Source: Podarcis liolepis
Lineage: Eukaryota
NCBI GenBank assembly: GCA_965112155.1
Contig: OZ218101.1
Length of the DNA: 64,000 bases
Strand: one strand, 5' to 3'
Shown here: positions 6,554 to 54,889 of the stretch, piece by piece
Layout: each line of letters starts with the position of its first letter
How positions within the stretch are numbered: position 1 is the first letter of the stretch
Notes under the pieces: model-generated
The model's database searches: none
What the model was told of the DNA's origin: nothing
Seen by the model: the letters and a program-made list of their open reading frames with translations, nothing else
Translations under genes and position numbers: made by a program

Positions 6554-6920
6554 AAGGTAAAGGTAAAGGTACCCCTGCCCGTACGGGCCAGTCGTGACCG
6601 ACTCTAGGGTTGTGCCCTCATCTCACTCTTGAGGCCGGGAGCCGGCGCCATCCGAAGACACTTCCGGGTCACGTGGCCAGCGTGACGAAGCTGCACTGGT
6701 GATCCAGCACCAGTGCCGCACACGGAAACGCCGTTTACGTCCCTCTATAAAGCGGTCCCTATTTATCTGCTTGCACTTAGGGGTGCTTTCGAACTGCTAG
6801 GTGGGCAGGAGCTGGGACTGAACGACGGGAGCTCACCCCGCCGCGGGAATTCGAACCGCCGACCATACGATCAGCAAGTCCTAGGCACTGAGGTTTTACC
6901 CACAGCGGCACCCGCGTCCC
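6554..6920 (-). mobile_element. Sauria SINE (full length)
   Basis: (ACCTTT)n tail on the minus strand; tRNA-derived head with B-box GGTTCGAATTC; perfect 13-bp TSD TATTCTTTATTTA (6541-6553, 6921-6933). Confidence 0.9.
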
Positions 6921-7397
6921 TATTCTTTATTTATTTCCATTTTAATTCTACCCTTCCTCCTATGAGCTCAAGGCAGTATGCTTGGTTCTCCCACCCACGC
7001 TGTGAAGTAGGTTTGGCTGAGACATAGTGATTTGTCCAAGATCATGCAGTGAGTTTCGTGGCACTGTGGGGATTTAAGGCTGAAAGAGTAGCATACAACA
7101 ACCTTGTAACGTTGCCCACTGTTTATATCCCCACAATGCAGGTTGGGAGGTCAGGCTGAGAAAATAGCATTCAACAACCCTGTTGTGTCGTCTACTGCTA
7201 CCATAGCCCTGTTGTAATTGGGGAGATAACCACTGACAAGAGAGTGTCTTTGAATAGGAGGCAACAACATAGCACAATCAACATTGCAGGTCAGAGGTAT
7301 GGTTGATATGGATTTTCAGCCAAAATCCCTGCATACAAAACAGCCCACAGGTTGCAGCAAAGGGTCATTTATTCAACTTCTCCACCCCCAATCTGAA

Positions 7398-7623
7398 CAT
7401 AGCTGTCAACTTTCAGATTTGAAAATAAGGGACCAGCAGCCTCACCTGTCCCGGGGACAGTCTACGGGATATCTGGGATATCTAACAATCCGGGATAGCA
7501 GTGGGAAGCAGCGGGAAACGGCGCTGGAATAAGGGAATTTCCCGCAAAAATGAATCTGAAATCCTGCATTTATCTGCATGCAAAAGGCTTCCATGCACAT
7601 GGACGGGCGACTTGAAAGGGCTG
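7398..7623. mobile_element. Older hAT-like MITE (CATAGCTGTCAAC.. end)
   Basis: Terminal motif and internal CGGGA repeats; right end degenerate and no clear TSD. Confidence 0.4.
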
Positions 7624-8160
7624 CATTCAGGGGCGCCGACTTATAAAAAATATTGGGGGGGCCCATACCGGGGTCCTGCCGCTGGTTCGCTCGGGTAGCC
7701 GGGAGAACGCAGTTCGAGGTGGCGGTGTTGGGGAGAGACCCTCGCTCAGGGCGCCACTAGACTTGGCGGCCGGCGGTCTATCTGGGGGGTTTTGGAGCGT
7801 ATTTCGGCGGAGCGATTGGGGAGGAGGGGGCTTGTTGCCGGATTCTTCAGCTGAGCCGGAGATCCGCTGCTGGGGGTCCCTGGGCCGAGTTGTGAGCACG
7901 GCCTGCTGAAGGGAGATCCAGCCGATTGCGCGACGGGGACGGCCGGGGCTCTCCGGCTAGGGCGCACGGCTGGCTGGCTGGCGAGGGAGCAGGTGGGGAG
8001 GAGGCGGGGGTCCTCACTCTCTTAGGAAACGCACCCGCGCGCCTGATTGCCACGAAGTCCGAAGGGTGTGTGTGTGGAATTAAAAAGCAAAAACGAGATA
8101 CGGGCAGGGCAGGCAAAGAGTTTTCTGCAAGAGGATGGAGGGCAGGTTGAAGAGAAAATC

Positions 8161-9180
8161 ACTCAGGATGAGACAGTCAAATCAGCCATGATAAAATGGG
8201 CTCAGGATATTGGGTATAACATCATGTTTGAGGACTGGGAAAGGTTATGGACCACCGGAATGAAATTCACGGCATGTAATGCCTTGAAGGAAAATATTAT
8301 GAAAATGATTTATAGGTGGTACATGACCCCAGTCAAGCTTGCAAAAATATATCACCTGTCTGATAATAAATGTTGGAAATGTAAGGAGGCTGAAGGGACA
8401 TTCTTTCACCTCTGGTGGACTTGTCCAAAAGTGAAGGCCTTCTGGGAAATGATCTATAATGAGTTAAAAAAGGTATTTAAGTATACCTTTCCCAAGAAAC
8501 CAGAGGCCTTCCTCTTGGGCATTGTTGGCCAGAAAGTGTTAAAGGATAGAACTTTCTTTATGTATGCAACTACAGCAGCAAGAATACTTATCGCAAAATA
8601 TTGGAAGACACAAGATTTGCCCACACTGGAAGAGTGGCAGACGCAATTGATGGACTACATGGAACTGGCTGAAATGACTGGCAGAATCCGAGATTTGGGA
8701 GAAGAAACAACGGAAGAGGACTGGAAAAAATTTAAGGACTATTTACAAAAACAATATAAGTTGTATGAATGTTAAAAATTTACACGATTCGGAAACTATA
8801 GCTTCAGCAATTAGATTTGGGAACCAGGAAATTATATTTTAAGTAAGAAAAGGTCAAAATCTAAGGTAATACAATGTTTAATTTAAGATATAAGTAACTG
8901 ATGAAAAGTATGTTAAATTTAGAGGTATAGTATTTGAAAAGTACAAAATAAGGTACGAAACAAGGTAATAATTTGCTGATATCTTTATTATAAAGAATGC
9001 AGGGTAAGGGAGATGCGAGGAAGTCCAGTTAGTTATATAAAAAATGTGTTGAATGGTTGGTTTTCTGTTCTTCTTTTTCTTTTCTTTTTCTTTTTCTTTT
9101 TCTTGTTCTTTTACTTTTTTCTTCAGTGTATGTTTCTAACTTTGTATTTGAAAACTTAATAAAATATTTATAAAAAAAAA
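8161..9180 (+). mobile_element. 5'-truncated L1-clade LINE (ORF2 C-terminus, 3' UTR, polyA), nested in the hAT element
   Basis: Open frame to stop 8775 with CWKC..GTFFHLWWTC zinc knuckle; AATAAA ~9158 then A-run; 12-bp TSD GAAGAGAAAATC (8149-8160, 9181-9192). Confidence 0.9.
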
Positions 9181-9699
9181 GAAGAGAAAATCCTTTCACT
9201 TTTCTGGGGCGCAGGGAAGTCTCAGAGCCGGAGGTTGGGGAAGGGACCCCCTTTGCTCTGGCCTCTTCTCCCGTCTTAGATTCGCATGGGGGTCCCCGCC
9301 CGAGCTTGCCTGGCCACCGGGCCACACAAGGGCCGCGCTCTACGCGGCGCACCTTGCTAGCCGCGCAGCTGTCCTCCGCGGCTGCGGAGCGGCCCTGCGC
9401 CGGTGCCCAGCCCCTCTGGGCGCCCGCTGCGCTGCCAATGACAAGCAGGCGACGTCGCGGGCGGGGAAGGCGTCGCTTTCTTTCCCGATCCTGCATCCTC
9501 CCAGTCTTCCAGCCCTTTTTTGGGTTGGAAGCTCGTCTCATTCGCCCTTCTCCTTTCTTCACCCTGCGCGCAATTTTCCTCCCTCGTCTCCCTCCCCATT
9601 TCTCCTTCCTTCCTTCCTTCCTTCCTGACTGACTAACGGGCTTGGGCTCGGGCTCAGGGTCGGGCTCGGGCAGCCACAGCGTCGGTGGTGTTGGGGATC

Positions 9700-9856
9700 G
9701 GCGGCGCGGGGGGATGGCCCTCCCGGGGGAGCCGGCGCTGCTCAATGGGGTTGCCAAGGAGACAAGCCGGCCGCCCCCTCCCCCGGCCCGGCGCCCCCCG
9801 CCGCGCCGGTGCCCGTTATCGAGCTGGTGCGCGCCGGGCGCCCTATAAAAGCCGCG
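9700..9856 (+). pseudogene. TAL1: Captured, frameshifted fragment of TAL1/SCL N-terminal coding exon
   Basis: Frame 1 reads RGGMALPGEPALLNGVAKETSRPP. After a frameshift in the C-run ~9775 it reads SPGPAPPAAPVPVIELVR..IK. This matches recalled human (LLNGVAKETSR..PVIEL) and chicken (RGGME..LLNG..SPGP..VPVIELVR..IKSR) TAL1. No bHLH domain is present. Confidence 0.8.
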
Positions 9857-9968
9857 GACGTGCCCACCGCCGCCCGAGATTATTGGGGGGGCTGAGCCCC
9901 CCCAAACGAATTTTTGAGGGGGCTCGGGCCCCCTCAGGCCCCATGGAGTCGGCGCCTATGGCTGCATT

Positions 9969-10054
9969 CATGGGTGTAGCCAGGATTTTTGTTAGGACGA
10001 CAGGACCTCATATGTTTATTGATTTTTATTGGGGGGGGGGCAGCTACACCCTTG
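9969..10054. mobile_element. 86-bp hAT MITE inserted at the same target site
   Basis: TIRs CATGGGTGTAGC / GCTACACCCTTG; flanked by GCTGCATT at 9961-9968 and 10055-10062. Confidence 0.8.
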
Positions 10055-10379
10055 GCTGCATTCAACTACTTAAGAGTACACCTTAAATTAGAGGACACGA
10101 CCTTGGGTTCATTATCTCAATAGAAGATACTCTGAGTAGGACTAAGAGCTCCTGCTTCTGTCTGTAGCCTTCAAGTTTTGGATTCCCCCACTGATTTCTA
10201 TAAAGACAATTCTAGTTTCACCCCGGGGAGAAGAGTGTAAAAAAGAAAAAGGCGTTTGCAAGCAAGAAACTTGATAGTCCACTTCCCTATGCCTTGCCTC
10301 TCTCTTAATTCAAACCCCGCTTTTGCACTGTGCACTGGAAGTGAGTACAGGAAGCCCGTTCCAACCCCAGAGCAGCAGG

Positions 10380-10990
10380 AAAGGAGGCGCTGTAGAATCC
10401 GACGCATCCTACGTTTCTTAGCTTCAGACCATTCAGCTCCGGCAGCAAACCCGGAAGTGAGCGGGCGTCACGTCCGGCGGTTCCCCGTCACGTGACTGCC
10501 TTAGAAACTGTGGAATATGGCGGCGCCCGTGTCTCCGCCGTTGGTGGCGGAAGAAGGGCCGGCGAAAGTGAGGTAAGGAGGGCTCTGCGGAAGGGTCTGG
10601 TCCCCCTTATGGGGAGCTTCCCGCACGGAGGTGGAACCGGAGGTGGCGCGCGCTCGCTCGCTCGCTCATACGCTCGTCTCAGCTCCCGGTTCCCACACGT
10701 GGCGCTTTCGGGGATGAGGAAGCGCCACACAACCCCTCCCCCCCCCGACCCAAGCGTAAGCTGGGCTGCTCCTGCTTCTGGTAGTGGAAGGTTGAGCTGG
10801 GCTTCATAAGGGCGGGAAGGTTTCTGCAGGAGCCGCTGGAAAGCCTGACATGCTGCGCGTGCTTCAGGTGCTGCTTAGCTCCGAATGGGTGGGATTAAAG
10901 TGTACCTGGGGGAAAGCCATGAGGCAGGCAGATGTCATTTGTTGTGATGTGAAGGAAGGGGGGGGGGCGCCGCGGGGAACGTATAGGTAG
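10380..10990 (+). promoter_or_regulatory. ZRSR2 CpG-island promoter with ETS/GABP (CCGGAAGT 10451-10458), palindromic E-box GTCACGTGAC (10487-10496) and YY1-like ATGGCGGC at the start codon
   Basis: CpG-rich, TATA-less, housekeeping-type motifs directly upstream of the ATG. Confidence 0.75.
10517..10572 (+). CDS. ZRSR2: ZRSR2 exon 1 (MAAPVSPPLVAEEGPAKVS)
   Basis: ATG GCG GCG; donor AG|GTAAGG. Confidence 0.85.
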
Positions 10991-13900
10991 GTGGTGACTT
11001 TTGAAGCATCGCTATGGCTTGAAGCGAATCCAAAACCCTTAATGCTTAGTGAAATTGCAAAATCGTTAAGCCTTTATAGAGAAAGGGTCACGGATCCGAT
11101 ACAAGAAAGCGAGAAAAATAACTGTCCCTTTTATGTGGATGCCGTTAGATCTTTGGTATGCAATTAAAAAGACACCTGAGACTATGCCAACTGTTGCAAA
11201 CTCAACAGTAAAAAAGTGTTAAAGGAGTACAGTACAGTAACGTCTTCTTAAGGATTGGCACTGGGAAGTTTGGTACATGTTAAAACAAAGACATTGTACT
11301 TCTATACAGTGGTACCTTGGGTTACATATGCTTCAGGTTACATACGCCACTAACCCAGAAATAGTACCTCGGGTTAAGAACTTTGCATCAGGCTGAGAAC
11401 AGAAATCGTATTCTGGTGGCGCGGCAGCAGCAGGAGGCCCCATTAGCTAAAGTGGTGCTTCAGGTTAAGAACAGTTTCTGGTTAAGAACGGACCTCTGGA
11501 ATGAATTAAGTACTTAACCCGAGGTACCACTGTAGTTGGTTGGGGAACTGCTGTTGAAACATTTCTTAGACTTCATAATATGTATACATTTTGAACTAGA
11601 AATTGTATAGAACTGACAATCTGTGCCCAGTTTTTCTTTCTTTTGTTTATTATTCGTTTAGTATTTTCCTCCATTTCTTGGTTGGAATAATAAGCTTGCA
11701 TTCTTTCTTTTTTCCAAAAAATATTTTGTGGCAAAATATTAAAACAAGTAAATTTAAGTGGTTGCAATTCAACTTTAATATTAATGGCTGCAATCCCAGC
11801 AGCCTTTGAACTTTGAATAAATATGAATAGGATTTTGACATAAAAGAATCAGTTTACAGGGCAATCTCACCCATGTCTTCACCGAAGTCCCACTGGGTTT
11901 GTTGTGATATACTTACCAGTTTGCATTTCTTAGTGCAGAAAGTATTGATCTGATGTGTGATCTTTCCTATTCTAATTAATTCAAGAGGGTTCTGGGGGCT
12001 TCTGTGTGTGAAAGAAAAAAGCAGGTGGTTCGTGATGTTTGGGTTATTCCTTCAGAGAAGCTGAGTACAGCTGGCTTAAATTCTTATCTCTTCTGTCAAG
12101 GTAATGCTGACTACAAAAATAGGCCAGGAGGAGCCCGGGTTTCACTTTCTCTTTCTATCTCTTTTCCTTCTGGTGTGGTGTTCTGTACATAGTATGCTTG
12201 GTGTTAAGGTTTAGACTTATAAGTTATTGTAAGTTTAAGTTAAGTCTGCTGCAACTGGATTTCTTATGGACTACATCCAATCCTGGATGTAGGATTTGTG
12301 ACCATTATGCTCATTTGCCTTCAGTAGCAGTAAAGCTCTGCTAGATGAAATAATTGTCTCTGGTCTATTTTTGAGAAATTCTGCAACATGTTTAAGTTTT
12401 TACTTGGCTAGCTATACATCGGAGTTCTGCTCTGGATCATATTGAGTAGAATTCTATGACAATACTATCAGAAAAAATGACATTTGTTTGTTTTAATCTA
12501 ATAAGAAAACATTGTTATAAATGTTTGTATGTTCAACACTTGAGAAATCCTAGTTGACTGTTAGCTGGCCAATTACTACAGAAACAAAGAAGAATCTTTT
12601 TTCCATTTTCAGCCACAAAAAGTACAGAGCACTTTTGAAGAAAGAGAAACGGAAGAAAAAGAGACAAGCACTAGCAAGATTGAGAGATTCAGGTAAAAGC
12701 TAAGTTGATGAATGGCACAGATTACTTGTGAAATATGAGCTAAATTTCAGCTCTCAGAAGATGGTTGTTATTGGTATTCAGAAGTGTTTAAAAATGTTGT
12801 TTTAGATTGAAAAGAATAGGTAATTGTTTTTCATTACTTGTCAACAAGGCTGCAGCCTCTTCATCTGATCATAGGTTGGGAAGTGTACCGTATTTTTTGC
12901 ACCATAACACTCACTTTTTTCCTCCTAGAAAGTAAGGGGAAATGTCTGTGCATGTTATGGAGGAAATGCCTACGGGTGGCATGCCTACGGATTTTCCTCC
13001 TCTAAAAACTACGTGCGTGTTATGGTCGGGTGCGTGTTATAGAGCGAAAAATACGGTAATTCATGACTGTGGCAATCTTGAGAACATAGGCTCTATGCAT
13101 GCACTGAAGACTGCCTTGGACCTTAGATTGTGTAGAATGCAGTGGTTTGCCTCATGGCAAGGGTAAGCTATCTATGTTATATATTTAAAACGAGGTACCC
13201 TTTTTTCTCTTCAGAAAAAGGAGAGAAAGATGAACAGGTTTCTGAAAAGCTAGAAGATGACGACCTAGATGATGAAGAAAAACAACTCGAAGAGGAAAGG
13301 TAAATTAAAATTATATTTAATTGGCAGCTCTACTCTATGCATATTTACCGTATTTTTCGCCCCATAAGACGCACCGGCCCATAAGACGCACCTAGATTTT
13401 TGGGGGGGAAATAAAGGAAAAAAAATTTATTTCCCCCCCAGGTGCGCTGCGCTACACCAGGAGCTTGGGGCGTGCGGAGCTCAGCGCGCCCCAAGCTTCT
13501 GCGTGCAGGCAAGGTCTCCGCTAGCGTCGGAGAGCCGGGCGCCTCTCCCAGGGCTAGCGGACTCCTGCGCTAATCCAGAAGCTTGGGGCAAGCTGAGGTC
13601 AGCGCGCCCCAAGCTTCTGCGTGCCGGCAAGCAGTCCGCTAGCCCTGGGAGAGCCGCGGGGCTCTCCCAGGGCTAGCGGATCGCTGCGCTATACCAGGAG
13701 CTTGGGGCGTGCTGAGCTCAGTGCGCCCCAAGCTTCTAGGTGCGCGCAAGCAGTCCGCTGCCGCCCCAAGCCTGGCGCACCCGGCAGGAGGTCCCACCGG
13801 GTGCGCGAGGCTTGGGGCGGCAGCGGACTGCTTGCGTGCACCTAGAAGCTAGCAGTCCGCTGCCGCCCCAAGCCTGGCGCACCCGGTGGGACCTCCTGCC

Positions 13901-16900
13901 GGGTGCGCCAGGCTTGGGGCGGCAGCGGACTGCTAGCTTCTAGGTGCGCGCAAGCAGTCCGCTGCCGCCCCAAGCCTCGCGCACCCCCTGCCGGGTGCGC
14001 CAGGCTTGGGGCGGCAGCGGACTGCTTGCGCGCACCTAGAAGCTAGCAGTCCGCTGCCGCCCCAAGCCTGGCGCACCCGGTGGGACCTCCTGCGGGTGCG
14101 CCAGGCTTGGGGCGGCAGCGGACTGCTAGCTTCTAGGTGCGCGCAAGCAGTCCGCTGCCGCCCCAAGCCTCGCGCACCCCCTGCCGGGTGCGCCAGGCTT
14201 GGGGCGGCAGCGGACTGCTTGCGCGCACCTAGAAGCTAGCAGTCCGCTGCCGCCCCAAGCCTCGCGCACCCGGTGGGACCTCCTGCGGGTGCGCCAGGCT
14301 TGGGGCGGCAGCGGACTGCTAGCTTCTAGGTGCGCGCAAGCAGTCCGCTGCCGCCCCAAGCCTCGCGCACCCCCTGCCGGGTGCGCCAGGCTTGGGGCGG
14401 CAGCGGACTGCTTGCGTGCACCTAGAAGCTAGCAGTCCGCTGCCGCCCCAAGCCTCGCGCACCCGGTGGGACCTCCTGCGGGTGCGCCAGGCTTGGGGCG
14501 GCAGCGGACTGCTAGCTTCTAGGTGCGCGCAAGCAGTCCGCTGCCGCCCCAAGCCTCGCGCACCCCCTGCCGGGTGCGCCAGGCTTGGGGCGGCAGCGGA
14601 CTGCTTGCGCGCACCTAGAAGCTAGCAGTCCGCTGCCGCCCCAAGCCTCGCGCACCCGGTGGGACCTCCTGCGGGTGCGCCAGGCTTGGGGCGGCAGCGG
14701 ACTGCTTGCGCGCACCTAGAAGCTAGCAGTCCGCTGCCGCCCCAAGCCTCGCGCACCCGCAGGAGGTCCCACCGGGTGCGCCAGGCTTGGGGCGGCAGCG
14801 GACTCCTTGCGCGCACCTAGAAGCTAGCAGTCCGCTGCCGCCCCAAGCCTGGAGCACCCGGTGGGACCTCCTGCAGGTGCGCCAGGCTTGGGGCGGCAGC
14901 GGACTGCTAGCTTCTAGGTGCGCGCAAGCAGTCCGCTGCCGCCCCAAGCCTCGCGCACCCGGTGGGACCTCCTGCCGGGTGCGCGAGGCTTGCAGACACT
15001 CGCCAGAAGCAGGGGGAGCCCTCCCGAGGGCTCCCCGTGCTTCGGGCGACAGGCTGCCGCCCCAAGCCTCGCGCACCCGGTGGGACCTCCTGCCGAGGGC
15101 GCGAGGCTTGCAGGCTTTCGCCCCATAAGACGCACCCCCGATTTCCTCTTCATTTTTGGAGAGGAAAAAGTGCGTCTTATGGGGCGAAAAATACGGTACT
15201 TAGAATAAAGTTCCAGTGGCTGATATTCAATGAAATGTGATGGAACAAGAGGATGCCCCTATGATATATTAACATTGCTTAGCTAGCTCAATAGACCAAA
15301 TGCAAAGGTGGTGGGTTGGATCCAGACTTTACTTCCACCTTCTTGTTGGCAGAGGTAGGGTGACTTTTGCCAATTCCGTTCTCCCCTTCCAGCCCACTGC
15401 TGTTGTGCAAGTGAAGTGTAAAGTTGCAGTGTTTAATTGCCTGTTTTAGGCCATAGTCCAAAACTTTGAGGAATTACTCTGCTAAATAGTCTTGAGGCTG
15501 CAACCTTATTCATAGTTATCTAGGGATACTCTCCATTGAACATAGTGCTTTAAATGCCAAGTAAACATGTATAAGTTAGCACTGTATGAATTGGAGCCTG
15601 TGCCCCCTAGCTCTTCTGAGGCCTTTCTTTAGAGGTCCGCCTTTGAAGATTAGGTGAGCAACTACACAAGAGAGATCCCTGGAATTCTATCCCCAGGTTG
15701 CTTAGTCTGACACCATCATTATTACCTTTTAGACACCAGGCCATGTTTCCCCCTGGGTGCCCAATCTTATTAGTAATTAGCTTATATGGTTTAGCCATAT
15801 GGCTGCTACTTTACTGCTGTGCTTTTGCTATTTTAAACAGTACTTAATTTGAATATTACTATTTTAAATAGAAAGGCAGAATTATTATTTTTTTAAGAAA
15901 TAAAAACATAGTAAGTTTGATGACATTCAGTGATAACCCAGGATTCATCGGATTCTATTTGCAGGCAGAGGCTTCATGAGGAGTGGTTGCTGCGAGAAGA
16001 AAGGGCACAAGAAGCTTTTAAGATCAGGAAAGCAAAAGAAGAAGCAGCAAGAAAACGTCAAGAGGAGGAAGAGGTGCAGTATATGCTTTGACTACCTTTT
16101 TGGAGCAGACATTCTAAACATAAAAATAATTACTGAGGTCTTTATTAAAAAAACAACACCACCAAAAAGCAATGGTTGTGTGAGAGGACTTCTCTCTCCA
16201 GCCACCCATCACCTCCATCTGTCTCTGCTGGAAAACCCTGCAACCTGCTGGTGCAGGGTTGCTGGAGGAGCTGCAGGGGGGAAATGAGAACCAATTCTGT
16301 CAGAGGTGACTTTTCCACTGGCAGATGGACAGTGTTAGATTTCACACCTTCATTTTACCTTTGACTAATTTTGGAAAACACAGCACTAAAGTATAGTGCT
16401 TAAGGCTGGCTTATTTCTGGGAAAGTTTTCATCGATTGTTGGGAGGCTGATTTTAAATGATGAGGGCAAAGTTGGACTTTTAAGGCTCGTTCAGTTCTGT
16501 GTTAACTGTAATCTGCAATGAAGGGGGGGCGGGAAGAAGTTAACACACACCTAATGACCTATGTTGCTTTCTTCAGTATCTCAAAAAAAGTAGTAGATAG
16601 GTAGCCGTGTTGGTCTGCCATAGTCAAAATAAAAAAAATCCTTCCAGTAGCACCTTAAAGACCAACTAAGTTAGTTCTTGGTATGAGCTTTCGTGTGCAT
16701 GCACACTTCTTCAGATACACAAAAAAAGTAAGTGGCAAATTAGTTTACATTTATCACTTATTGGTTAAAGCAAGTAGCAACTAAAATTATTTTATTTGTT
16801 CAGCCTTCATGGAGATATTTAGCATAATGCCAGTCTCTGTTTGTTTTTTTAAAGCAAAGAATAAAAGAAGAATGGGAGGAACAGCAAAGGAAAGAGCAAG

Positions 16901-22900: not shown

Positions 22901-25684
22901 CGTTTCCATTTTGGCTTCATTGTTGTTAAATAAATCATGACATGGTGTAATATGTCATGTGTTGTTATTCATCTGAGGTTGCATTTTCCAAATCTTAAGA
23001 CCTGCTAAGGAACAGATGGTTGTTATTATATCCCCATATGTAAAACCACAGAATTCAAAGAGGGTGTACTTTTCTTTTTCCCATGACTGTATAACCCATT
23101 AAATCAAGAGAAAAGTAACACTTCTTACTTTGCGTTATGTGAGAGCTGTTTTGGAATGTGCAGTTGACGAATCACAATGGTAGTTCATGGATTCCACTCA
23201 CACAGCACATTGTTCTTCAGGAAGATGGGCCTAATGCCAGTTATTTTTGCAAAAATCTAGCTGAACCCTGAAGTGTGCGTTGGTTAAACAGAAGGGCTAG
23301 GTATCAGTTCTTGATAGTGACAAGACAAGATTTTGAATTTGACATACCTAGAACTTGAAAACATTACATACATTCCAAATTGAATATAGCCCCCCCCCCA
23401 TGTTTGTTACCCAGTCAGCTTGCTCAGCTTGGGGTACAATAAGAGATTGCACTTGTGTGCGGTTTTTAAAATGAAACTAAAACAAGTAAGACATAACAAC
23501 AACAACAAAACATGCCATATTCTCTGCTCTCCCACCTCCCTAGCCCTCAGTGGTACAGTTAGATTACAAATCCATTAAGAATTATTATGCTTATCAGTTT
23601 TGTTTTGTTGTGCAGCTTGGAATAATTGGAAGGAGTTCAGGTGTTTTGTTTACCCACTCCAGTGGAGATAAAGATCATCAGCTTGTTGCCATGATGCGAT
23701 TTGATGTTCATATATCAGTTAGGATAGCCATATCTGTCATAGCATGGGTGATAATCTGTCTGTCCTGTGATTGTTATTAAGACATGAAAAACGGCTACCA
23801 AACCATGAAAGAAAGTGCATTTTGTGTGCTATAATTAAATAAGGTATCTTGTAAACCACTCAACTAAAGCAGCTGTGTAAGGATACAAAGAAACTGCGCT
23901 TCCTTAAGTTTTAACCTGCTTTTGATATAGGTGAGCTGCAACTTTGAACCTCATCTTCGAGGAAATGTTTACGTTCAGTACCAAACGTAAGTATTTAAAA
24001 TTTAGTAGTTGGTAAACTGAATGAGAAATCATAAGGAAGGTTTATGTGGTATGGGTGGGTATATTGGTAAAGCTCTTTCCCAGGAAAGATGGCTAATTCT
24101 CCATATTGATGCAATATCACTTGATTGAATTGTATTGATTTTATGAGGTTCTAATAATACTTTTTTATTTTTAAAGAGAACAAGAATGTCAGCAGGCTTT
24201 TGCTTTATTCAATGGTCGATGGTATGCAGGTCGGCAGCTTCAATGTGAATTTTCTCCAGTAACAAGGTGGAAAACAGCTATTTGTGGTAAGTCAGTGAAA
24301 ACCTCCAGCTCTAACAGCTGATATCTTTCAGCCTAAATGTCTTTCATGTAATTGAATTATACATAAATTATAATTTTAAAGTGAATGCAACTGATAGGGT
24401 GTTGGCCCTATCGACACATTGGATAGTATCTTATTTGAAAGATCCCGTTCTGCATTAAGTAATAAATAAGTTTCCACACCTTTGAGTACATCAGGAGATA
24501 TCATGTGTATTCGAACCCACCATGCTACACCTTGGCATCACAGTATCAAGCATTTCCTATATTCAAAAATACAATTGTGAAACAGGGATTGTACCTATAT
24601 ATATATATACACTATACAAGACACAAGATAGCACCTATGAGAGATGATGCCAGGGCCCAGCAGTAGCAGCTGTTTCTGAGTCAGTGCATTTGCTAGAGCT
24701 GCTGGCTTCCACGCCCTGAATATGGTTCACTGATACCTCTGGTAGGGATGCCTGGGCCACACTGAGCTGTCTGATACAAGTTGATGGGCCTTCCGCTTGA
24801 CTGCCGTGTGGTTAGACAGAAGCAGATATCGCAGTTGCTAGAATACACCTAAAAGTGAACAAGATCATATATGACTCTGATTCAAACTTGCCTTTCTGTC
24901 CATGTGATATCAAGATAAGGGGCAATATCTAGCTGTGACTTCCAGCTTAGGCAACAGACTTCTGCTTGCACCAACGGGATTTGCTCTTCCTCTCCTGCAC
25001 CACTTTAAAATCTGCAACGGGGACAGAATCCAACTGTGTCTTCAAATGCAACATTGATTTCCTACAGTTATTAAAACGAGACATGATCCACCCCTTTCAC
25101 CCATACATCTGTGATAAAAAATATCATGCAGATAAAAATAAACATAGAAGTGTCCACTGAGTCTATTTAGCTTTCAAATGTTATAATTACGGTTGTCTTC
25201 AGACTTTGATAATCAGTTTCAAAATTGGTTTTCAGGTTTGTTTGAAAGGCAAAAGTGTCCAAGAGGGAAGCATTGCAACTTTCTTCATGTGTTCAGAAAT
25301 CCAAACAATGAGTTCTGGGAGGCCAACAGAGATATTTATAATACCTCGGAATGGACCAAAGAGGCAAGTAAATATTCAGAAAGGAGAAATAGAGCGGGAT
25401 ACCATGAAAACTATTACAGCAGGTCAAGAAGAAGAAGTAGTCAAAGTCCAGATCACGCTTACAGCAAAAGAAACGGAGACTCTGAAAGGGAAAAGCGTTA
25501 TCACAAACGTAAGAAAAGACAATTTCCTGAGAGGTCACGAAGTCGTGGAAGGCGACGGTCACGCAGTAAGAAGAGGCGAGGCCGGAGTCGCAATAGGAGC
25601 CCAACCCGTAGCCGTAGCAGAAGTTCCTCTCGGTCGAGAAGTCGAGGTAGAAAACGATCCAGCAGCAGAGGCAGAAATAGTTGA
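10517..25684 (+). CDS. ZRSR2: ZRSR2 (U2AF35-related splicing factor; coiled coil, CCCH-UHM-CCCH, RS tail), 11 coding exons, 1401 nt / 466 aa
   Basis: Exons 10517-10572, 12613-12692, 13215-13299, 15965-16073, 16855-16941, 20109-20147, 21081-21196, 22256-22469, 23931-23986, 24177-24286, 25236-25684. All introns are GT-AG and phases are consistent. Peptides [51 protein letters not shown] and CPRGKHCNFLHVF match ZRSR2. Confidence 0.96.
11307..11532. mobile_element. Tigger/pogo-type MITE
   Basis: TIR CAGTGGTACCT(T/C)GGGTTA; TA TSDs. Confidence 0.85.
12613..12692 (+). CDS. ZRSR2: ZRSR2 exon 2
   Basis: [28 protein letters not shown]/GT flanks. Confidence 0.95.
12888..13056. mobile_element. Tc1/mariner (Tc2-like) MITE, short version
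   Basis: TIR CCGTATTTTT..; TA TSDs. Confidence 0.85.
13215..13299 (+). CDS. ZRSR2: ZRSR2 exon 3 (acidic)
   Basis: Polypyrimidine acceptor, donor AG|GTAAAT; phase fits. Confidence 0.9.
13348..15196. mobile_element. Tc1/mariner (Tc2-like) MITE with expanded palindromic interior
   Basis: TIRs CCGTATTTTTCGCCCCATAAGACGCAC / GTGCGTCTTATGGGGCGAAAAATACGG; TA TSDs at 13346-13347 and 15197-15198. Confidence 0.9.
13735..14990. repeat. GC-rich array of alternating inverted ~33-bp arms, with a 193-bp higher-order unit
   Basis: Arm GCAGTCCGCTGCCGCCCCAAGCCT(C/G)GCGCACCC and its reverse complement alternate; units start at 13934, 14127, 14320, 14513. Confidence 0.95.
15965..16073 (+). CDS. ZRSR2: ZRSR2 exon 4
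   Basis: QRLHEEWLLREERAQEAF. Confidence 0.95.
16593..16719 (-). mobile_element. Penelope-like element terminal fragment
   Basis: Typical squamate PLE end (GGTAGCCGTGTTGGTCTG..GCACCTTAAAGACCAAC..GAGCTTTCGTG..CTTCTTCAGATAC); 11-bp flanking repeat CAAAAAAAGTA (16582-16592, 16720-16730). Confidence 0.75.
16681..16718 (-). ncRNA. Minimal type I hammerhead ribozyme motif
   Basis: Minus strand reads GUAU-CUGAAGA-A-GUGUG(CAUG)CACAC-GAAA-GC-UC-AUAC: conserved core, stem I GUAU/AUAC, stem II, palindromic mini-stem III. Confidence 0.75.
16855..16941 (+). CDS. ZRSR2: ZRSR2 exon 5
   Basis: QRIKEEWEEQQRKEQEEE. Confidence 0.92.
17903..18053 (-). mobile_element. tRNA-derived SINE with CR1-like tail
   Basis: Minus-strand A/B-box-like head and GGACTATATGATCC..TTCGAACTCTACAATTCCATGATT tail; a related copy lies at ~57140-57262. 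Confidence 0.6.
18400..19010 (-). mobile_element. Degenerate L2-like LINE fragment
   Basis: Translation ..LHCLPI..FKV..KALNSCGPGYL resembles L2; boundaries approximate. Confidence 0.6.
19024..19189. mobile_element. hAT MITE
   Basis: TIRs CGGTGGCGGAG / CTCCGCCAGTG; 8-bp TSD CTCAGAAA/CTCAGAAT. Confidence 0.75.
20109..20147 (+). CDS. ZRSR2: ZRSR2 exon 6
   Basis: EAVQKMLDQAESQ; TAG|..CAG|GTATGT. Confidence 0.92.
21081..21196 (+). CDS. ZRSR2: ZRSR2 exon 7 (start of CCCH1)
   Basis: [28 protein letters not shown]. Confidence 0.95.
22256..22469 (+). CDS. ZRSR2: ZRSR2 exon 8
   Basis: CSRRHNHPTSS..FYEDVLPEFRNVGKVIQFK. Confidence 0.97.
22885..23091. mobile_element. Tc1-like transposon terminal fragment
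   Basis: End GAGGGTGTACTTTTCTTTTTCCCATGACTG|TA resembles Tc1 TIRs. Confidence 0.5.
23931..23986 (+). CDS. ZRSR2: ZRSR2 exon 9
   Basis: VSCNFEPHLRGNVYVQYQ. Confidence 0.96.
24177..24286 (+). CDS. ZRSR2: ZRSR2 exon 10
   Basis: [36 protein letters not shown]. Confidence 0.96.
25236..25684 (+). CDS. ZRSR2: ZRSR2 exon 11 (CCCH2 and RS domain, stop)
   Basis: LFERQKCPRGKHCNFLHVFRNPNNEFWEANRDIY..RS repeats; TGA 25682-25684. Confidence 0.96.
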
Positions 25685-29494: not shown

Positions 29495-29862
29495 CAGTGT
29501 TCGAAACTCCCATTGTTCTCGGCACATTAGTGACAGGGAAATTCATTAGCGTGAGCAGTTTCTGAGCTCTGGGAGCCTAAGATTTCAGATTAAAACTGCA
29601 GAGTGGAAGGAAAGGAGGACCTTTTTCTGCCTCCACACTTCCAGCTACTCTCTGAAGACTGAGAAGAGAATATTAGGGGGGCGGGCAGGGAAAGGACTAG
29701 ACCATATGGGAAATGAACATAGTATCTTAGCTGCGGTTCATTTGTTTTCAGTTTCGTATTCTTGTTATAAAAAGCGTGCCTAGACATTCCGTTGTTGCAA
29801 CCATAACCTAGCTATAAGGTGCCATTTAGCTCCTATCTTTCATATCTCAGTTCCTAACACTG
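29495..29862. mobile_element. hAT MITE
   Basis: TIRs CAGTGTTCGAAACT / AGTTCCTAACACTG; 8-bp TSD TTACCCAT/CTACCCAT. Confidence 0.7.
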
Positions 29863-51916: not shown

Positions 51917-53677
51917 TTAAGAGCAGAGAAACATTGTGTAGTGGGCTTTTCCACAAATTGATGCATCTTTTAACAAAAGCTTAACTGTTTCATATTTTAC
52001 ACTTGGTGAATAGCACAAATCATAATCTTCGCCTGGAATTTGTTGAAAGACCCTAGCAACTAGTCTTGCCTTGTACCTTACAACTTCATTTTTGTCATTC
52101 ATTTTAACTCTATAAACCCATTTTGAATCAATAAGTCTCATATCTGGGGTTTGTGGTACGAGAGACCAAGTGTTATGCTCTTTTAAAGAAGCTATCTCAG
52201 AGTTCATAGCTTTATACCAATTTACAGCTTGGTGCTTAGGTAACTTCTGAACATCATTGTAGCTTTTTGGCTCAAAAACCACCTTATTGGCATACACAGT
52301 ATTAAAATGTTCATCTGCAAAACGTTGTGGCTTCTGCCTCTTTCTATCTGAACGTCTCAGTCCGGAAGGAGAGTCAGACTCCTCAGACTTAATGGGACTG
52401 AGTGAACTACTAGTTTCAGGTTGTAAATCATCATTGTCAGACTGAAGAGGTGCCTGTAGGCTAAGCTCACGGTCAGAAAACTCAAGAGAATCTAGCCTCC
52501 CCTCGGGTGCCTGTGACTTTAAATCCTCAAACAAATTATCAGATCCAACAGGCTTTTTGTCTTTTTCCATTAATTCAGAAGCACCATTTCCTCCTGCTTC
52601 TGCTTCTTCTACCTCTTCTTCCCCAGTATCATTTATACCATCAGTATCTTGGAAAACAGCAACCCCATTCCACTTTACAGTTTGTATCATGCTTCTGGTA
52701 ATATGAAATTTGCCAGTTGCTGGGACGTAAATTCTGTACGCCCCCTGCTGGTAGCCCATTAATTTTCCCTGGACACTACGCTCACCCAATTTCTGCTTAG
52801 CAGGATAATGCATAATTACATCTGAACCCCTAATACGTAGGTATTTCAGATTAGGGCGTTTTTTAAACAACTTCTCATAGGGGGTGACATCTAAACCAGA
52901 ATTATAACTGCGATTTCTAACATAACAAAAGGCATGGAGCGCTTCAGCCCAAAAGTCTTTGGGCAGATTAGCATCGTGCAGATAAGTTTTAACCCCTGCC
53001 TGCAAGTCACGCTGCACAACTTCAACAAGCCCATTTTGCCAGGGACTTCGGGGGCAAGATAACTCATGAGTAGTCCCCTGCGCTTCCAGGAATTTCTCAA
53101 AATCCTCAGAAACAAATTCCCCACCCCGGTCAGAAAACAGGTTCTTAATTGGTTTGTTAAAGTGCGTTTTTACCCAGTTGCAAAAAAACTTGTACTTCTC
53201 AAATGCTTGGGACTTCTCAGCTATTGCATAAGTCCAACAATATCTACTATACTGGTCTATGAGAGTAAGCCAGTACTTAGAACCTCCTAATGATGGTGGG
53301 AGTGGCCCAACTAAATCACAATGTACACGCTCAAATGGCTCAGTTACTTTCCTATCTGAGCACCTACCCTTGTGTGCAACCTTAATCTTATTCTTGCAAC
53401 AGGATAGACATTGCATAAAGAATTTGCATGGTTTTAAGTTGAGGCCATTGACAATATTCTTTGTCTTAATTACATCAGCAAAATTCAGGTGTCCCAGAAT
53501 TCTGTGCGCCACGTGGATACACCCAGAATGTGGTCTTACATTCCTCAACCCCTGGCTTGACTGTGCTGCTCTGCAATTTATATGCGATTGTGAGTAGGTG
53601 TGAAAATACAGTCTATATAAACCATCAGATTCCCGGGCATACAATAGACGTTTGTTCCCCTCGAAAAACTCACACAT
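51917..53677 (-). CDS. Copia integrase (HHCC, DDE, GKGY) plus N-terminal stub of RT; out of frame with gag-PR
   Basis: HRILGH..CLSC, HCDLVGP, SDRGGEF, QNGLVE, GKLMGY, NTWSLV..SKWVYRVK..YKARLVAR; no YVDD motif. Confidence 0.9.
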   Translation of the reverse strand: MCEFFEGNKRLLYARESDGLYRLYFHTYSQSHINCRAAQSSQGLRNVRPHSGCIHVAHRILGHLNFADVIKTKNIVNGLNLKPCKFFMQCLSCCKNKIKVAHKGRCSDRKVTEPFERVHCDLVGPLPPSLGGSKYWLTLIDQYSRYCWTYAIAEKSQAFEKYKFFCNWVKTHFNKPIKNLFSDRGGEFVSEDFEKFLEAQGTTHELSCPRSPWQNGLVEVVQRDLQAGVKTYLHDANLPKDFWAEALHAFCYVRNRSYNSGLDVTPYEKLFKKRPNLKYLRIRGSDVIMHYPAKQKLGERSVQGKLMGYQQGAYRIYVPATGKFHITRSMIQTVKWNGVAVFQDTDGINDTGEEEVEEAEAGGNGASELMEKDKKPVGSDNLFEDLKSQAPEGRLDSLEFSDRELSLQAPLQSDNDDLQPETSSSLSPIKSEESDSPSGLRRSDRKRQKPQRFADEHFNTVYANKVVFEPKSYNDVQKLPKHQAVNWYKAMNSEIASLKEHNTWSLVPQTPDMRLIDSKWVYRVKMNDKNEVVRYKARLVARVFQQIPGEDYDLCYSPSVKYETVKLLLKDASICGKAHYTMFLCS

Positions 53678-54791
53678 AGACTAAGAAACGCACAGTTATG
53701 CCTTGACGGGCAAAGCACCTTACTGACAATAAATTGTCCACTGACGGGCAGTAAATGCAGTTCGCTATTGTAATGTTTAAAGAGTCAAGTTTAACAGTAC
53801 CCCTGCCAAGCGACTGCAGGACTTGTGAATTGGCTAAATGTACATTACCAATTTCCTCTTCGAAAGAAATAAACAAGCTTCGATCATTGCAGACGTGCTG
53901 CGATGCTCCTGAGTCGACAACAAAAGACTTCCACTTGGCACCTTTAATTCTTTTACGATCTTTAGTCCAAGCGTGAAAAGCTCGCGGCTCGTTTCTGTCC
54001 TTACGGTACGATGCCGGCTGCTGGGCTGACGACCGTGATTGACGAACAGAAACAGGCTTGGGAGTACTTTGCTTTCCTTTGGATCTGCAGTCCCTTGCAA
54101 AATGTCCTTGCTTATTGCAGAACCAACAACGCTTTGCAGCTTTAAATGCAGTTGTATCACCACAGGTTTGCATATGGCGTTCCTCATTCTTTCTGGAAAC
54201 AGGAGTGCTTATGGCACAAGCCTCCCTTCTATCCAACTCGCCCATTAATCTTGCCGTTACCCCTTCCACAGTTAATTGTGCTGGTGGAACAGCAGATATC
54301 TGGCTAGCTATACCATCAAAGTCCTCATTAAGGGAACAAAGGATGATAAAAATATACTGAATATCAGGTATCTCCATGTCCCTTTGAATTGATTCGCCGC
54401 GTATTGCCTCCAGACGTCTCAAGTGTGCTGCCAAATCACCACCAGGCTGCAACTTCGTCTGGTACAACTGCTTGAAAAACGTCAATGCAGACGCTGACTC
54501 TTTTCTAACATGCACTGCTGCAAGACTGTCCCACATTTCTTTGGCAGTTTTCTTATTCCTTATATAGACTACTTGCTGGTCGCTGACTGCCAAATTAATT
54601 ATCGCCCTGGCTTTTGCATCTCCTTTCGACCAAGCATTAGTTACAGGGTCAGGAGGGTCATCAGTTACATAGGTCCATACTTCTCTAGAGGTCAAAAGCG
54701 CCTCCACCCGAAAAGACCATAAACTATAGTTCTCATCTGTTAGCTGTGGGAAGACCAGAGCCTTCTCAGCTTCAGGAACCCGGTCAACCAT
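53670..54791 (-). CDS. Copia Gag (CCHC knuckle) plus aspartic protease
   Basis: LTDENYSLWSFRVEALL, CWFCNKQGHFARDC, VVDSGASQH; ATG at 54791. Confidence 0.9.
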   Translation of the reverse strand: MVDRVPEAEKALVFPQLTDENYSLWSFRVEALLTSREVWTYVTDDPPDPVTNAWSKGDAKARAIINLAVSDQQVVYIRNKKTAKEMWDSLAAVHVRKESASALTFFKQLYQTKLQPGGDLAAHLRRLEAIRGESIQRDMEIPDIQYIFIILCSLNEDFDGIASQISAVPPAQLTVEGVTARLMGELDRREACAISTPVSRKNEERHMQTCGDTTAFKAAKRCWFCNKQGHFARDCRSKGKQSTPKPVSVRQSRSSAQQPASYRKDRNEPRAFHAWTKDRKRIKGAKWKSFVVDSGASQHVCNDRSLFISFEEEIGNVHLANSQVLQSLGRGTVKLDSLNITIANCIYCPSVDNLLSVRCFARQGITVRFLVYV

Positions 54792-54889
54792 TCTGGAACT
54801 CTTCCAGACCCACAAAAACTACGCTAACAGGAGAAGGAGTTTTCAAACCTTTCTCAGAGTCCAAAAATATGCAGTCATCCACTCAGCAG

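Follow-up and report, generated by a model that had tools for sequence, protein, structure and literature searches.

Positions 7628–9960 of the window (the whole 64-kb stretch of DNA analysed) are very probably an insertion of a non-autonomous hAT-type transposon, here called element A, which belongs to a high-copy lacertid family and carries, together with other GC-rich DNA and a nested L1 fragment, a piece of a coding exon of TAL1. A second, much smaller element, element B, lies directly beside it. The features of the region are as follows, with the strand given where one is assigned and with the three copies of GCTGCATT placed by sequence.

7620–7627: target-site duplication GCTGCATT, copy 1
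7628–7664, + strand: left terminus of element A, holding the TIR CAGGGGCGCCGACT (7628–7641) and the subterminal motif TTGGGGGGGC (7653–7662)
7665–8160: cargo segment 1, 64% G+C, CpG observed/expected 0.89, no origin assigned
8149–8160: L1 target-site duplication GAAGAGAAAATC, left copy, 12 bp, direct repeat
8161–9180, + strand: 5'-truncated L1 3' fragment, comprising the ORF2 C-terminal part, 3'UTR, AATAAA and A9 tail
9181–9192: L1 target-site duplication GAAGAGAAAATC, right copy, 12 bp, direct repeat
9193–9629: cargo segment 2, rich in G+C and resembling a promoter (GC box, CCAAT at 9436), with (CCTT)n at its end, no origin assigned
9630–9877, + strand: fragment of a TAL1 exon, matching residues ~34–109 of Podarcis TAL1
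9878–9960, + strand: right terminus of element A, holding TTGGGGGGGC on both strands, an internal palindrome and the TIR (9947–9960)
9961–9968: target-site duplication GCTGCATT, copy 2, common to elements A and B
9969–10054: element B, 86 bp, MITE-like, TIR CATGGGTGTAGC / CAAGGGTGTAGC (as reverse complement), 11/12
10055–10062: target-site duplication GCTGCATT, copy 3

The two 14-bp TIRs of element A, CAGGGGCGCCGACT on the left and CATAGGCGCCGACT on the right (9947–9960 as reverse complement), agree at 12 of 14 positions, and the 8-bp duplication on both flanks is perfect, as is characteristic of hAT elements. The TIRs of hAT elements are ~10–25 bp in length with the terminal motif YARNG (PMC3014272); the left end, CAGGG, conforms to this motif, whereas the right end of this copy, CATAG, departs from it with a T at the R position. 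In the reads, about half of the left ends of the family are CAGGGACGCGGACT. The motif TTGGGGGGGC, found in the right terminus at 9883–9892 on the + strand and at 9896–9905 on the − strand, occurs three times in the 64 kb, always inside the termini of element A, and three occurrences were reached in none of 100 shuffles. When the window was scanned for 8-bp direct repeats with TIRs agreeing at 12/14 or better, the pair of element A was the single one found outside an inverted-repeat array, which lies at 13.7–15.1 kb and is unrelated to element A. Block shuffles yielded on average 0.025 such pairs for each window, with any pair at all in five of 200. The boundaries are also visible in RNA reads from many family copies, which lose their match exactly at 7628 (77 reads) and exactly at 9960 (66 reads), with diverse flanks in both cases; past 7664, 108 reads run into one other interior with an agreement of 0.98. 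A single-copy-depth contig of run X2 spans 7515–7633; no contig bridges the element junctions by at least 31 nt on each side, and the contigs stop at the repeat boundary.

No transposase was found in element A, either among the listed ORFs of at least 40 aa or by Pfam on three cargo ORFs, and the window holds no autonomous partner, the eight ORFs scanned outside element A being without transposase. Nor does the 64-kb window contain further family members, as the TIR, the element B TIR and the G-run motif are confined to the region of elements A and B; a site at 29671 was considered as a further member and rejected as unrelated. Metagenome contigs scanned with terminus and junction patterns gave no match, as expected for a lizard repeat. 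The original prediction of imperfect 14-bp TIRs with a perfect 8-bp duplication of hAT type is thus supported by sequence, reads and shuffles, and that of an interior without transposase by the ORF listing and Pfam; the ~1.2 kb of GC-rich cargo that it had described once the L1 was removed was measured as 496 + 685 bp, with a G+C content of 64–69%.

The CpG observed/expected ratio of this cargo is 0.87–0.95, compared with 0.29–0.36 in the flanks. The one ORF of cargo segment 1 submitted to Pfam (7926–8147) gave no match, and the part of the cargo traced to TAL1 is ~250 of ~1,180 bp, or ~21%. This part encodes the motifs LLNGVAKETSR and VPVIELVR in two different reading frames, and the two pieces were searched and aligned separately and never joined. 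When 1.84 billion proteins were searched with phmmer, the match was the product of a squamate TAL1 exon (E 4.7e-11), itself 61–66% identical to named squamate TAL1 proteins; matches to P0001 and P0003 were rejected as relatives, these being repeat or low-complexity proteins. Annotated Podarcis TAL1 proteins exist, and positions 9630–9877 are, at protein level, ~94% identical to residues ~36–109 of Podarcis muralis TAL1, including lacertid-specific residues, with GSHSVGGVG, PAPP and VRAGRPIKAAD common to the window pieces and Podarcis TAL1 (tblastn E 5e-23 and 3e-15). The source of the fragment is the first coding exon of TAL1, a large one, and both ends of the fragment lie inside it. The fragment cannot make TAL1: the exon's initial ~28 codons are missing, as is all that follows residue ~109, the bHLH included, a frameshift lies near 9770–9776 and an in-frame stop lies at 9846. 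For TAL1 biology nothing follows from a piece so short, broken and devoid of the bHLH; its possible effect would be that of dispersed CpG-rich DNA, not that of a transcription factor. At two sites, 9765 (A>G) and 9861 (T>C), the majority of the family has letters that give back the native Podarcis ETGR and DAP and are nearer to native TAL1 than those of the present copy; together with the conservation of the TAL1 motifs of the fragment in birds and turtles, they indicate the direction of transfer, from TAL1 into the element. The phmmer result and the lacertid-specific residues therefore uphold the earlier reading of the right part as pieces of TAL1. As for the further claim that a TAL1 CpG island had been captured, TAL1 origin is shown for 9630–9877, and nothing in the data makes the other ~930 bp part of such an island.

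The bHLH exon of TAL1 is absent from the entire 64-kb window, so that this is not the TAL1 locus, as had been proposed. It is scarcely credible that the region is instead a TAL1 paralogue or pseudogene, or a segmentally duplicated CpG island, in which TIRs and duplication arose by chance: the region is indeed GC-rich and CpG-island-like and adjoins a real promoter, but against this stand the missing bHLH, the similarity to TAL1 that breaks off inside the exon at both ends, the reads of many copies that stop exactly at the two element boundaries and the low yield of the shuffles given above.

The abundance of the family was followed in three DNA runs from three organisms, X1, X2 and X4, as summed contig depth, which is not a copy number. 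Across these runs the interior of element A has a summed word depth ~1,000–8,000 times that of the single-copy flanks. In X1 and X2 the summed depth of the cargo is 9e4–4e5 against ~50–85 for the flanks, and X4 behaves alike; for cargo segment 1 it is 1.1e5–3.9e5 against ~55, and for the terminus ~7e5–1e6 against ~50. In RNA run X23 all copies together give the cargo a depth of 0–25, and the neighbouring gene has only 0.6 over its exon 1. The read depth suggests that the cargo-carrying element is present in hundreds to thousands of copies. It is distinctly unlikely that the element is a low-copy Pack-hAT whose few copies appear numerous through the summing of GC-rich, partly matching contigs. 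The nature of summed depth would leave room for this, as would a protein search with the 68-aa sense ORF, in which no ORFs of other copies were found, a search weakened by its length window and by the short repeat contigs; however, only 992 of 22,746 contigs in X1 match partly, the pattern recurs in all three organisms, and non-repetitive TAL1 positions such as 9765 (11 contigs, depth sum 113,773) carry the same alternative letter in every contig, each at a depth near 1e4.

A second copy lies outside the window, where the P. muralis gene model LOC144327575 (P0055) runs antisense through the equivalent of 9139–9867. It matches throughout cargo segment 2 and across the boundary to the L1 tail, differs from the present copy by three indels and departs from it near 9868–9877, where either the gene model may have a splice site or the copy may end differently. 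Depth, the diverse flanks in the reads and this copy all favour members of like structure at different loci, although no second target-site duplication was seen. Since the interior depth marks element A as one copy of a high-copy family, its present locus is not the capture site: the original prediction had placed the capture event here, and the depth points instead to insertion of an element already formed, while strongly favouring the accompanying suggestion that it may be one member of a cargo-carrying family. For the same reason a single-copy Pack-TIR made in place, in which a gap in a resident hAT was filled by copied TAL1 DNA, is very improbable; most animal Pack-TIRs are of such a kind (PMC8277862), but here the cargo is multicopy by depth and the second copy has the same internal junctions.

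The nested fragment has the features of a LINE-1, namely the C-terminal region of ORF2, a poly(A) tail and a duplication within the range of 7–20 bp. Its ORF, with a stop at 8773–8775, matches residues 1068–1223 of human L1 ORF2p (E 1e-13) and contains a weak zf-RVT match, and its AATAAA lies at 9158–9163. Contigs of the L1 family extend upstream beyond 8161, and the depth of the 3'UTR falls in the same class as that of the cargo. The fragment had been taken for a later insertion; the junction shared with P. muralis and the depth speak against this, and the L1 fragment probably belongs to the unit that spread with the family. That it is private to this copy, with most family members lacking it, is unlikely. 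Its clean 12-bp duplication and A-tail resemble those of a recent insertion, and no read evidence is listed directly over 8160/8161; yet P0055, encoded outside the window, crosses the same junction of cargo and L1 tail (9139–9192), positions 8824 and 8873 of the 3'UTR lie in the depth class of the cargo with one alternative letter in every covering contig, and no high-depth joint of 8160 to 9193 is listed, although thousands of copies without L1 should yield one.

Element A has only the parts for mobilisation in trans, the 14-bp TIRs and the subterminal G-run motifs; where a transposase gene would stand, it has ~1.2 kb of GC-rich foreign DNA, the last ~250 bp of which come from the TAL1 exon. 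In a history consistent with these observations, the TAL1 piece would have been gained once, elsewhere in the genome, perhaps through template switching in hAT repair or replication. L1 retrotransposition into the master element would have come next, and the composite may then have been amplified to the order of 1e2–1e3 copies among roughly 1e4 elements with the same termini. One copy would have inserted upstream of the apparent ZRSR2, generating the 8-bp duplication, either beside the small related element B or ahead of its arrival, element B using the same 8-bp target.

Four known systems are instructive. In the available text of the survey of animal Pack-TIRs (Tan et al. 2021, Nat Commun 12:4280; PMC8277862), hAT elements are the commonest carriers (208 of 370), 98.6% of Pack-TIRs occur as single copies, and no lizard cases are listed; multicopy ones are known from frog and alligator, and the four that are described have a few copies; Pack-hAT-N8_XT, for example, carries a 5'UTR fragment at three loci with distinct duplications. 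Like these, element A is non-autonomous, combines TIRs and a target-site duplication with the lack of a transposase and has an interior partly copied from a host gene; unlike the animal cases described there, it has a depth that speaks for copies in the hundreds to thousands, and its cargo is a mosaic with an L1 fragment. The Pack-MULEs and other Pack-TYPE elements of plants are TIR transposons that gain gene fragments, join them together and disperse them; the fragments are in many cases GC-rich 5' parts and are mostly non-coding once captured (PMC8903248, PMC6379663); these are Mutator or CACTA elements with duplications of 9–10 or 3 bp, whereas element A is hAT-type, with 8 bp, and resides in an animal. 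HelibatN3, a Helitron of vesper bats carrying the promoter and first exon of NUBPL, has amplified the 5' end of a gene to thousands, with the promoters of 15 genes in 4,690 copies (PMC4778049). Element A resembles it as a vertebrate DNA transposon with an amplified gene piece and promoter-like DNA, but HelibatN3 is a rolling-circle element with neither TIRs nor an 8-bp duplication, both of which element A has, and promoter activity and exon trapping have been demonstrated for HelibatN3, whereas the cargo of element A is promoter-like by its sequence. Among lizards, the non-autonomous hATs of Anolis carolinensis (~24,000 copies) have 8-bp duplications, YARNG ends and interiors that are unrelated to transposase, and are reported to incorporate extraneous DNA (Novick et al. 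2011; PMC3014272). None of the TIRs in the available part of the table in that article matches CAGGGGCGCCGACT, and the terms 'captured', 'host gene' and 'exon' are absent from the article.

That cut-and-paste transposons capture gene fragments is well established for plants, whereas in animals such capture has been described as rare and almost always single-copy (PMC8277862). Pack-type hAT elements are already known in animals, while amplification on the scale suggested here is undocumented there; if the present reading is true, Pack-type amplification at plant scale occurs in an amniote and offers a natural experiment on dispersed CpG islands, their escape from methylation, new promoters and antisense or chimeric transcripts. 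Annotation has already been misled, as LOC144327575 of P. muralis is an antisense ORF through a copy, and copies would produce spurious TAL1 matches. We tentatively raise the possibility, which we hold to be somewhat doubtful, that this wall-lizard hAT family is the most prolific carrier of gene fragments known among animal cut-and-paste transposons, with ~1e4 elements, a TAL1 subfamily at ~1e3 sites and other subfamilies bearing the CpG-island 5' ends of other genes; if so, the family would scatter promoter-like DNA that is rich in CpG and possibly unmethylated throughout the genome.

Between element A and the start codon of the gene that lies downstream, apparently ZRSR2, there are ~560 bp; a CCCH-finger regular expression gave nothing useful for this gene, and a comparison of its last exon with the PDB gave no match. 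Element B, which contains TATTGGGGGGGGGG, adjoins element A and is followed by the third copy of GCTGCATT; both element B and this third copy had been overlooked previously. The tandem arrangement, in which the target is present three times, is a hint that the transposase directs insertions to the ends of relatives already in place, and such insertion could be a route by which two ends come to flank and mobilise host DNA. Element B itself is found on single-copy-depth contigs of 756 and 763 nt, which have a depth of ~50 and start at 9967 and 9970.

Positions 7628-9960 are occupied by a transposase-less element (element A) with hAT-type ends and a target-site duplication, which carries a TAL1-derived piece in its interior and exists in many copies. 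It is abutted by a small MITE-like TIR element (element B).

Features of elements A and B
7620-7627 and 9961-9968: target-site duplication GCTGCATT, 8 bp, immediately outside element A
7628-7641: left TIR CAGGGGCGCCGACT, just inside the left GCTGCATT
7628-7664: left terminus of element A
7665-8160: GC-rich cargo
8161-9180: 5'-truncated L1 3' fragment
9193-9877: GC-rich cargo including the TAL1 piece
9878-9960: right terminus of element A
9947-9960, other strand: right TIR CATAGGCGCCGACT, just inside the right GCTGCATT
9969-10054: element B, 86 bp, directly 3' of the second GCTGCATT

The TIRs CAGGGGCGCCGACT and CATAGGCGCCGACT are identical at 12 of 14 positions. When the entire window was scanned for 8-bp direct repeats that enclose TIRs matching at 12/14 or better inside a 5-kb span, element A was the sole case besides an array of inverted repeats, unrelated to it, at 13.7-15.1 kb, and composition-preserving block shuffles gave 0.025 cases per window. 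In an RNA run, 77 reads lose their match immediately 5' of 7628 and 66 immediately 3' of 9960, in both cases with diverse continuations, which is the pattern given by many dispersed copies. A further 108 reads run past 7664 into a different interior with 98% agreement, so that the termini are common to other elements and foreign DNA begins at 7665. No contig reaches 31 nt past a junction in both directions. The TIRs and perfect 8-bp duplication of the original prediction are present as it described them, their ends being backed independently by public reads. Three copies of the motif TTGGGGGGGC are present in 64 kb, on both strands and always within the termini of element A (0 of 100 shuffles yield three copies); it is a candidate subterminal transposase-binding motif.

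The GC-rich parts of element A have a CpG observed/expected ratio of 0.87-0.95, versus 0.29-0.36 in the flanks. As had been predicted, no transposase is found in the element, either among the ORFs of at least 40 aa (the longest being at most 242 aa) or in Pfam, where three cargo ORFs gave no match. The L1 fragment, whose ORF matches residues 1068-1223 of human L1 ORF2p (E 1e-13), terminates with AATAAA and A9 and has a perfect 12-bp duplication, GAAGAGAAAATC, on both sides.

For the TAL1 piece, two reading-frame pieces were queried apart and never joined. Among 1.84 billion representative proteins, phmmer with the 68-aa ORF at 9642-9845 found one true relative (E 4.7e-11), P0002, an ORF of a public assembly that shares 61-66% identity with the large first coding exon of named squamate TAL1 proteins; the two remaining matches were repeat proteins, not relatives. 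By alignment and by tblastn against the window, 9657-9770 matches Podarcis muralis TAL1 residues ~36-73 and 9776-9877 matches residues 76-109, with just four residue differences in the two together. The Podarcis-special residues GSHSVGGVG, PAPP and VRAGRPIKAAD are present, which places the genome among the lacertids and makes the copy young relative to squamate divergence. Since the motifs of the piece are conserved in birds and turtles, the direction of transfer was from TAL1 to the transposon. The predicted capture of TAL1 stands, but for a damaged fragment: one additional base near 9770-9776 shifts the frame, (CCTT)n-containing DNA stands in place of the exon's initial ~28 codons, similarity stops at 9877 directly before the transposon terminus, and tblastn with P. 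muralis TAL1 found no other TAL1 part, the bHLH in particular, in the 64-kb window. The piece is without coding value.

Two database proteins of the gecko Sphaerodactylus also resemble TAL1. P0025, a C-type-lectin gene model (S. townsendi NKG2-A/NKG2-B-like isoform X3), begins with ~180 residues that are a degenerate copy, at 49% identity, of the entire first TAL1 coding exon, which has therefore been duplicated elsewhere in another squamate too. P0051, a UniRef entry labelled transaldolase, matches TAL1, bHLH included, at 89% identity; the label is an error that probably arose from a mix-up of 'TAL' names.

Contigs of three public DNA runs with three organism labels (X1, X2 and X4) were placed on 6950-10950 at ≥90% identity. 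The low-coverage run X4 has the same depth profile as the other two.

Summed contig depth in runs X1 and X2
Unique flanks: X1 about 56-84; X2 about 50
Cargo: X1 9e4-4e5; X2 9e4-3e5
Bins containing element A termini: X1 3e5-6e5; X2 4e5-7e5
L1 ORF part: X1 1.4-4.4e6; X2 0.7-3.3e6

Summed depth is no copy number, and as orders of magnitude only we put the cargo at hundreds to a few thousand copies and the termini at roughly ten thousand. This high depth over the cargo in all three runs bears out the suggestion of a cargo-carrying family. At 9765, within non-repetitive TAL1 coding sequence, 11 of 11 X1 contigs (depth sum 113,773) read G where the window has A. Nine positions set the window copy apart from the family majority (7777, 7966, 8824, 8873, 9261, 9447, 9540, 9765 and 9861), four of them by CpG transitions; at 9765 and 9861 it has changed away from native TAL1 residues (ETGR, DAP). 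It is thus further from native TAL1 than the majority, which argues that capture took place elsewhere and that a ready-made element inserted here.

The L1 fragment probably entered the master element, or its source DNA, before amplification. Among the contigs of the DNA runs its 3'UTR and the cargo share a depth class, all contigs over 8824 and over 8873 agree on a single letter other than the window's, just as they do within the cargo, and the joints listed include none of high depth that links 8160 to 9193. The minus-strand ORF at 9032-9757 has one protein match (E 4.5e-81), P. muralis LOC144327575 (P0055), residues 156-370 of which are the antisense reading of 9867-9139. This span comprises the whole of cargo segment 2 (9193-9629) together with the TAL1 piece and continues over the cargo/L1 junction to the L1 tail (FFFINILLSFQIQS at 9160-9139); relative to the window copy there are three indels, and about 13% of the aligned residues differ. 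Nothing in the window matches the first 155 residues of P0055. The protein appears to be encoded outside the window and is taken for a reading of another copy of the transposon. Annotated as an 'uncharacterized protein', it is probably an annotation artefact.

Element B has TIRs CATGGGTGTAGC and CAAGGGTGTAGC matching at 11 of 12 positions, contains a G-run resembling the element A motif and is followed by a third GCTGCATT at 10055-10062. In two runs it lies on contigs of single-copy depth, which start at 9967 and 9970 and reach 10733, breaking off where high-copy element A begins. The related elements A and B re-used exactly one 8-bp target, which is not expected by chance; our guess is that insertion aimed at the end of a resident relative caused the triple GCTGCATT.

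Element A belongs to the Pack-type hAT elements, which have already been described in animals: an animal Pack-TIR survey of 100 genomes counted 370 cases, of which 208 were hAT and only 4 multicopy, with described examples of 3 or 4 copies (PMC8277862), and Anolis hAT families are reported to take up extraneous DNA (PMC3014272). What would be new, if confirmed, is the scale of amplification of its family, the nearest parallel in scale being HelibatN3, a bat Helitron that carries the NUBPL promoter (PMC4778049). TAL1 may have been captured through a template switch while a hAT element was being repaired or replicated, and transposition would have followed, as the FoSTeST model proposes for multicopy Pack-TIRs (PMC8277862); the L1 would have arrived by target-primed reverse transcription, and amplification would have been driven in trans by some hAT transposase.

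The right end of element A is 558 bp upstream of the ATG (MAAP...) of an exon-like sequence with a splice donor at 10518-10575, within a CpG island, and the TAL1 sense strand faces this ATG. The RNA run, with 0 reads at 10032-10433 and almost none on the exon, is uninformative on promoter use. Further downstream, the 25193-25684 ORF looks like a CCCH finger (weak Pfam zf-CCCH) with an RS-rich tail behind it and would fit the last exon of ZRSR2, the gene named in the original prediction; a search of the PDB with this exon gave no match. The downstream gene's first intron holds, at 10788-10950, a locally fast-diverging or paralogous stretch, where organism A and B contigs depart from the window at 11-14 of about 165-215 positions, versus about 1% at 9967-10732.

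Other repeats lie in the window. Another high-copy repeat at 7398-7515 (summed depth up to 1e6, diverse flanks before 7398) has tandem units like AAAATAAGGGATCAGCAGCC in its other copies. The GC-rich, tRNA-related, SINE-like repeat at 6560-6920, starting GGTAAAGGTAAAGGTACCCCTGCC, resembles squamate SINEs. The array at 13700-15100, a strong signal in the TIR/duplication scan, consists of alternating inverted repeats. On the minus strand, 51917-54815 holds a Ty1/copia-like LTR retrotransposon whose reading frames are largely open: its two long ORFs have gag, integrase and RVT_2 domains of copia type.
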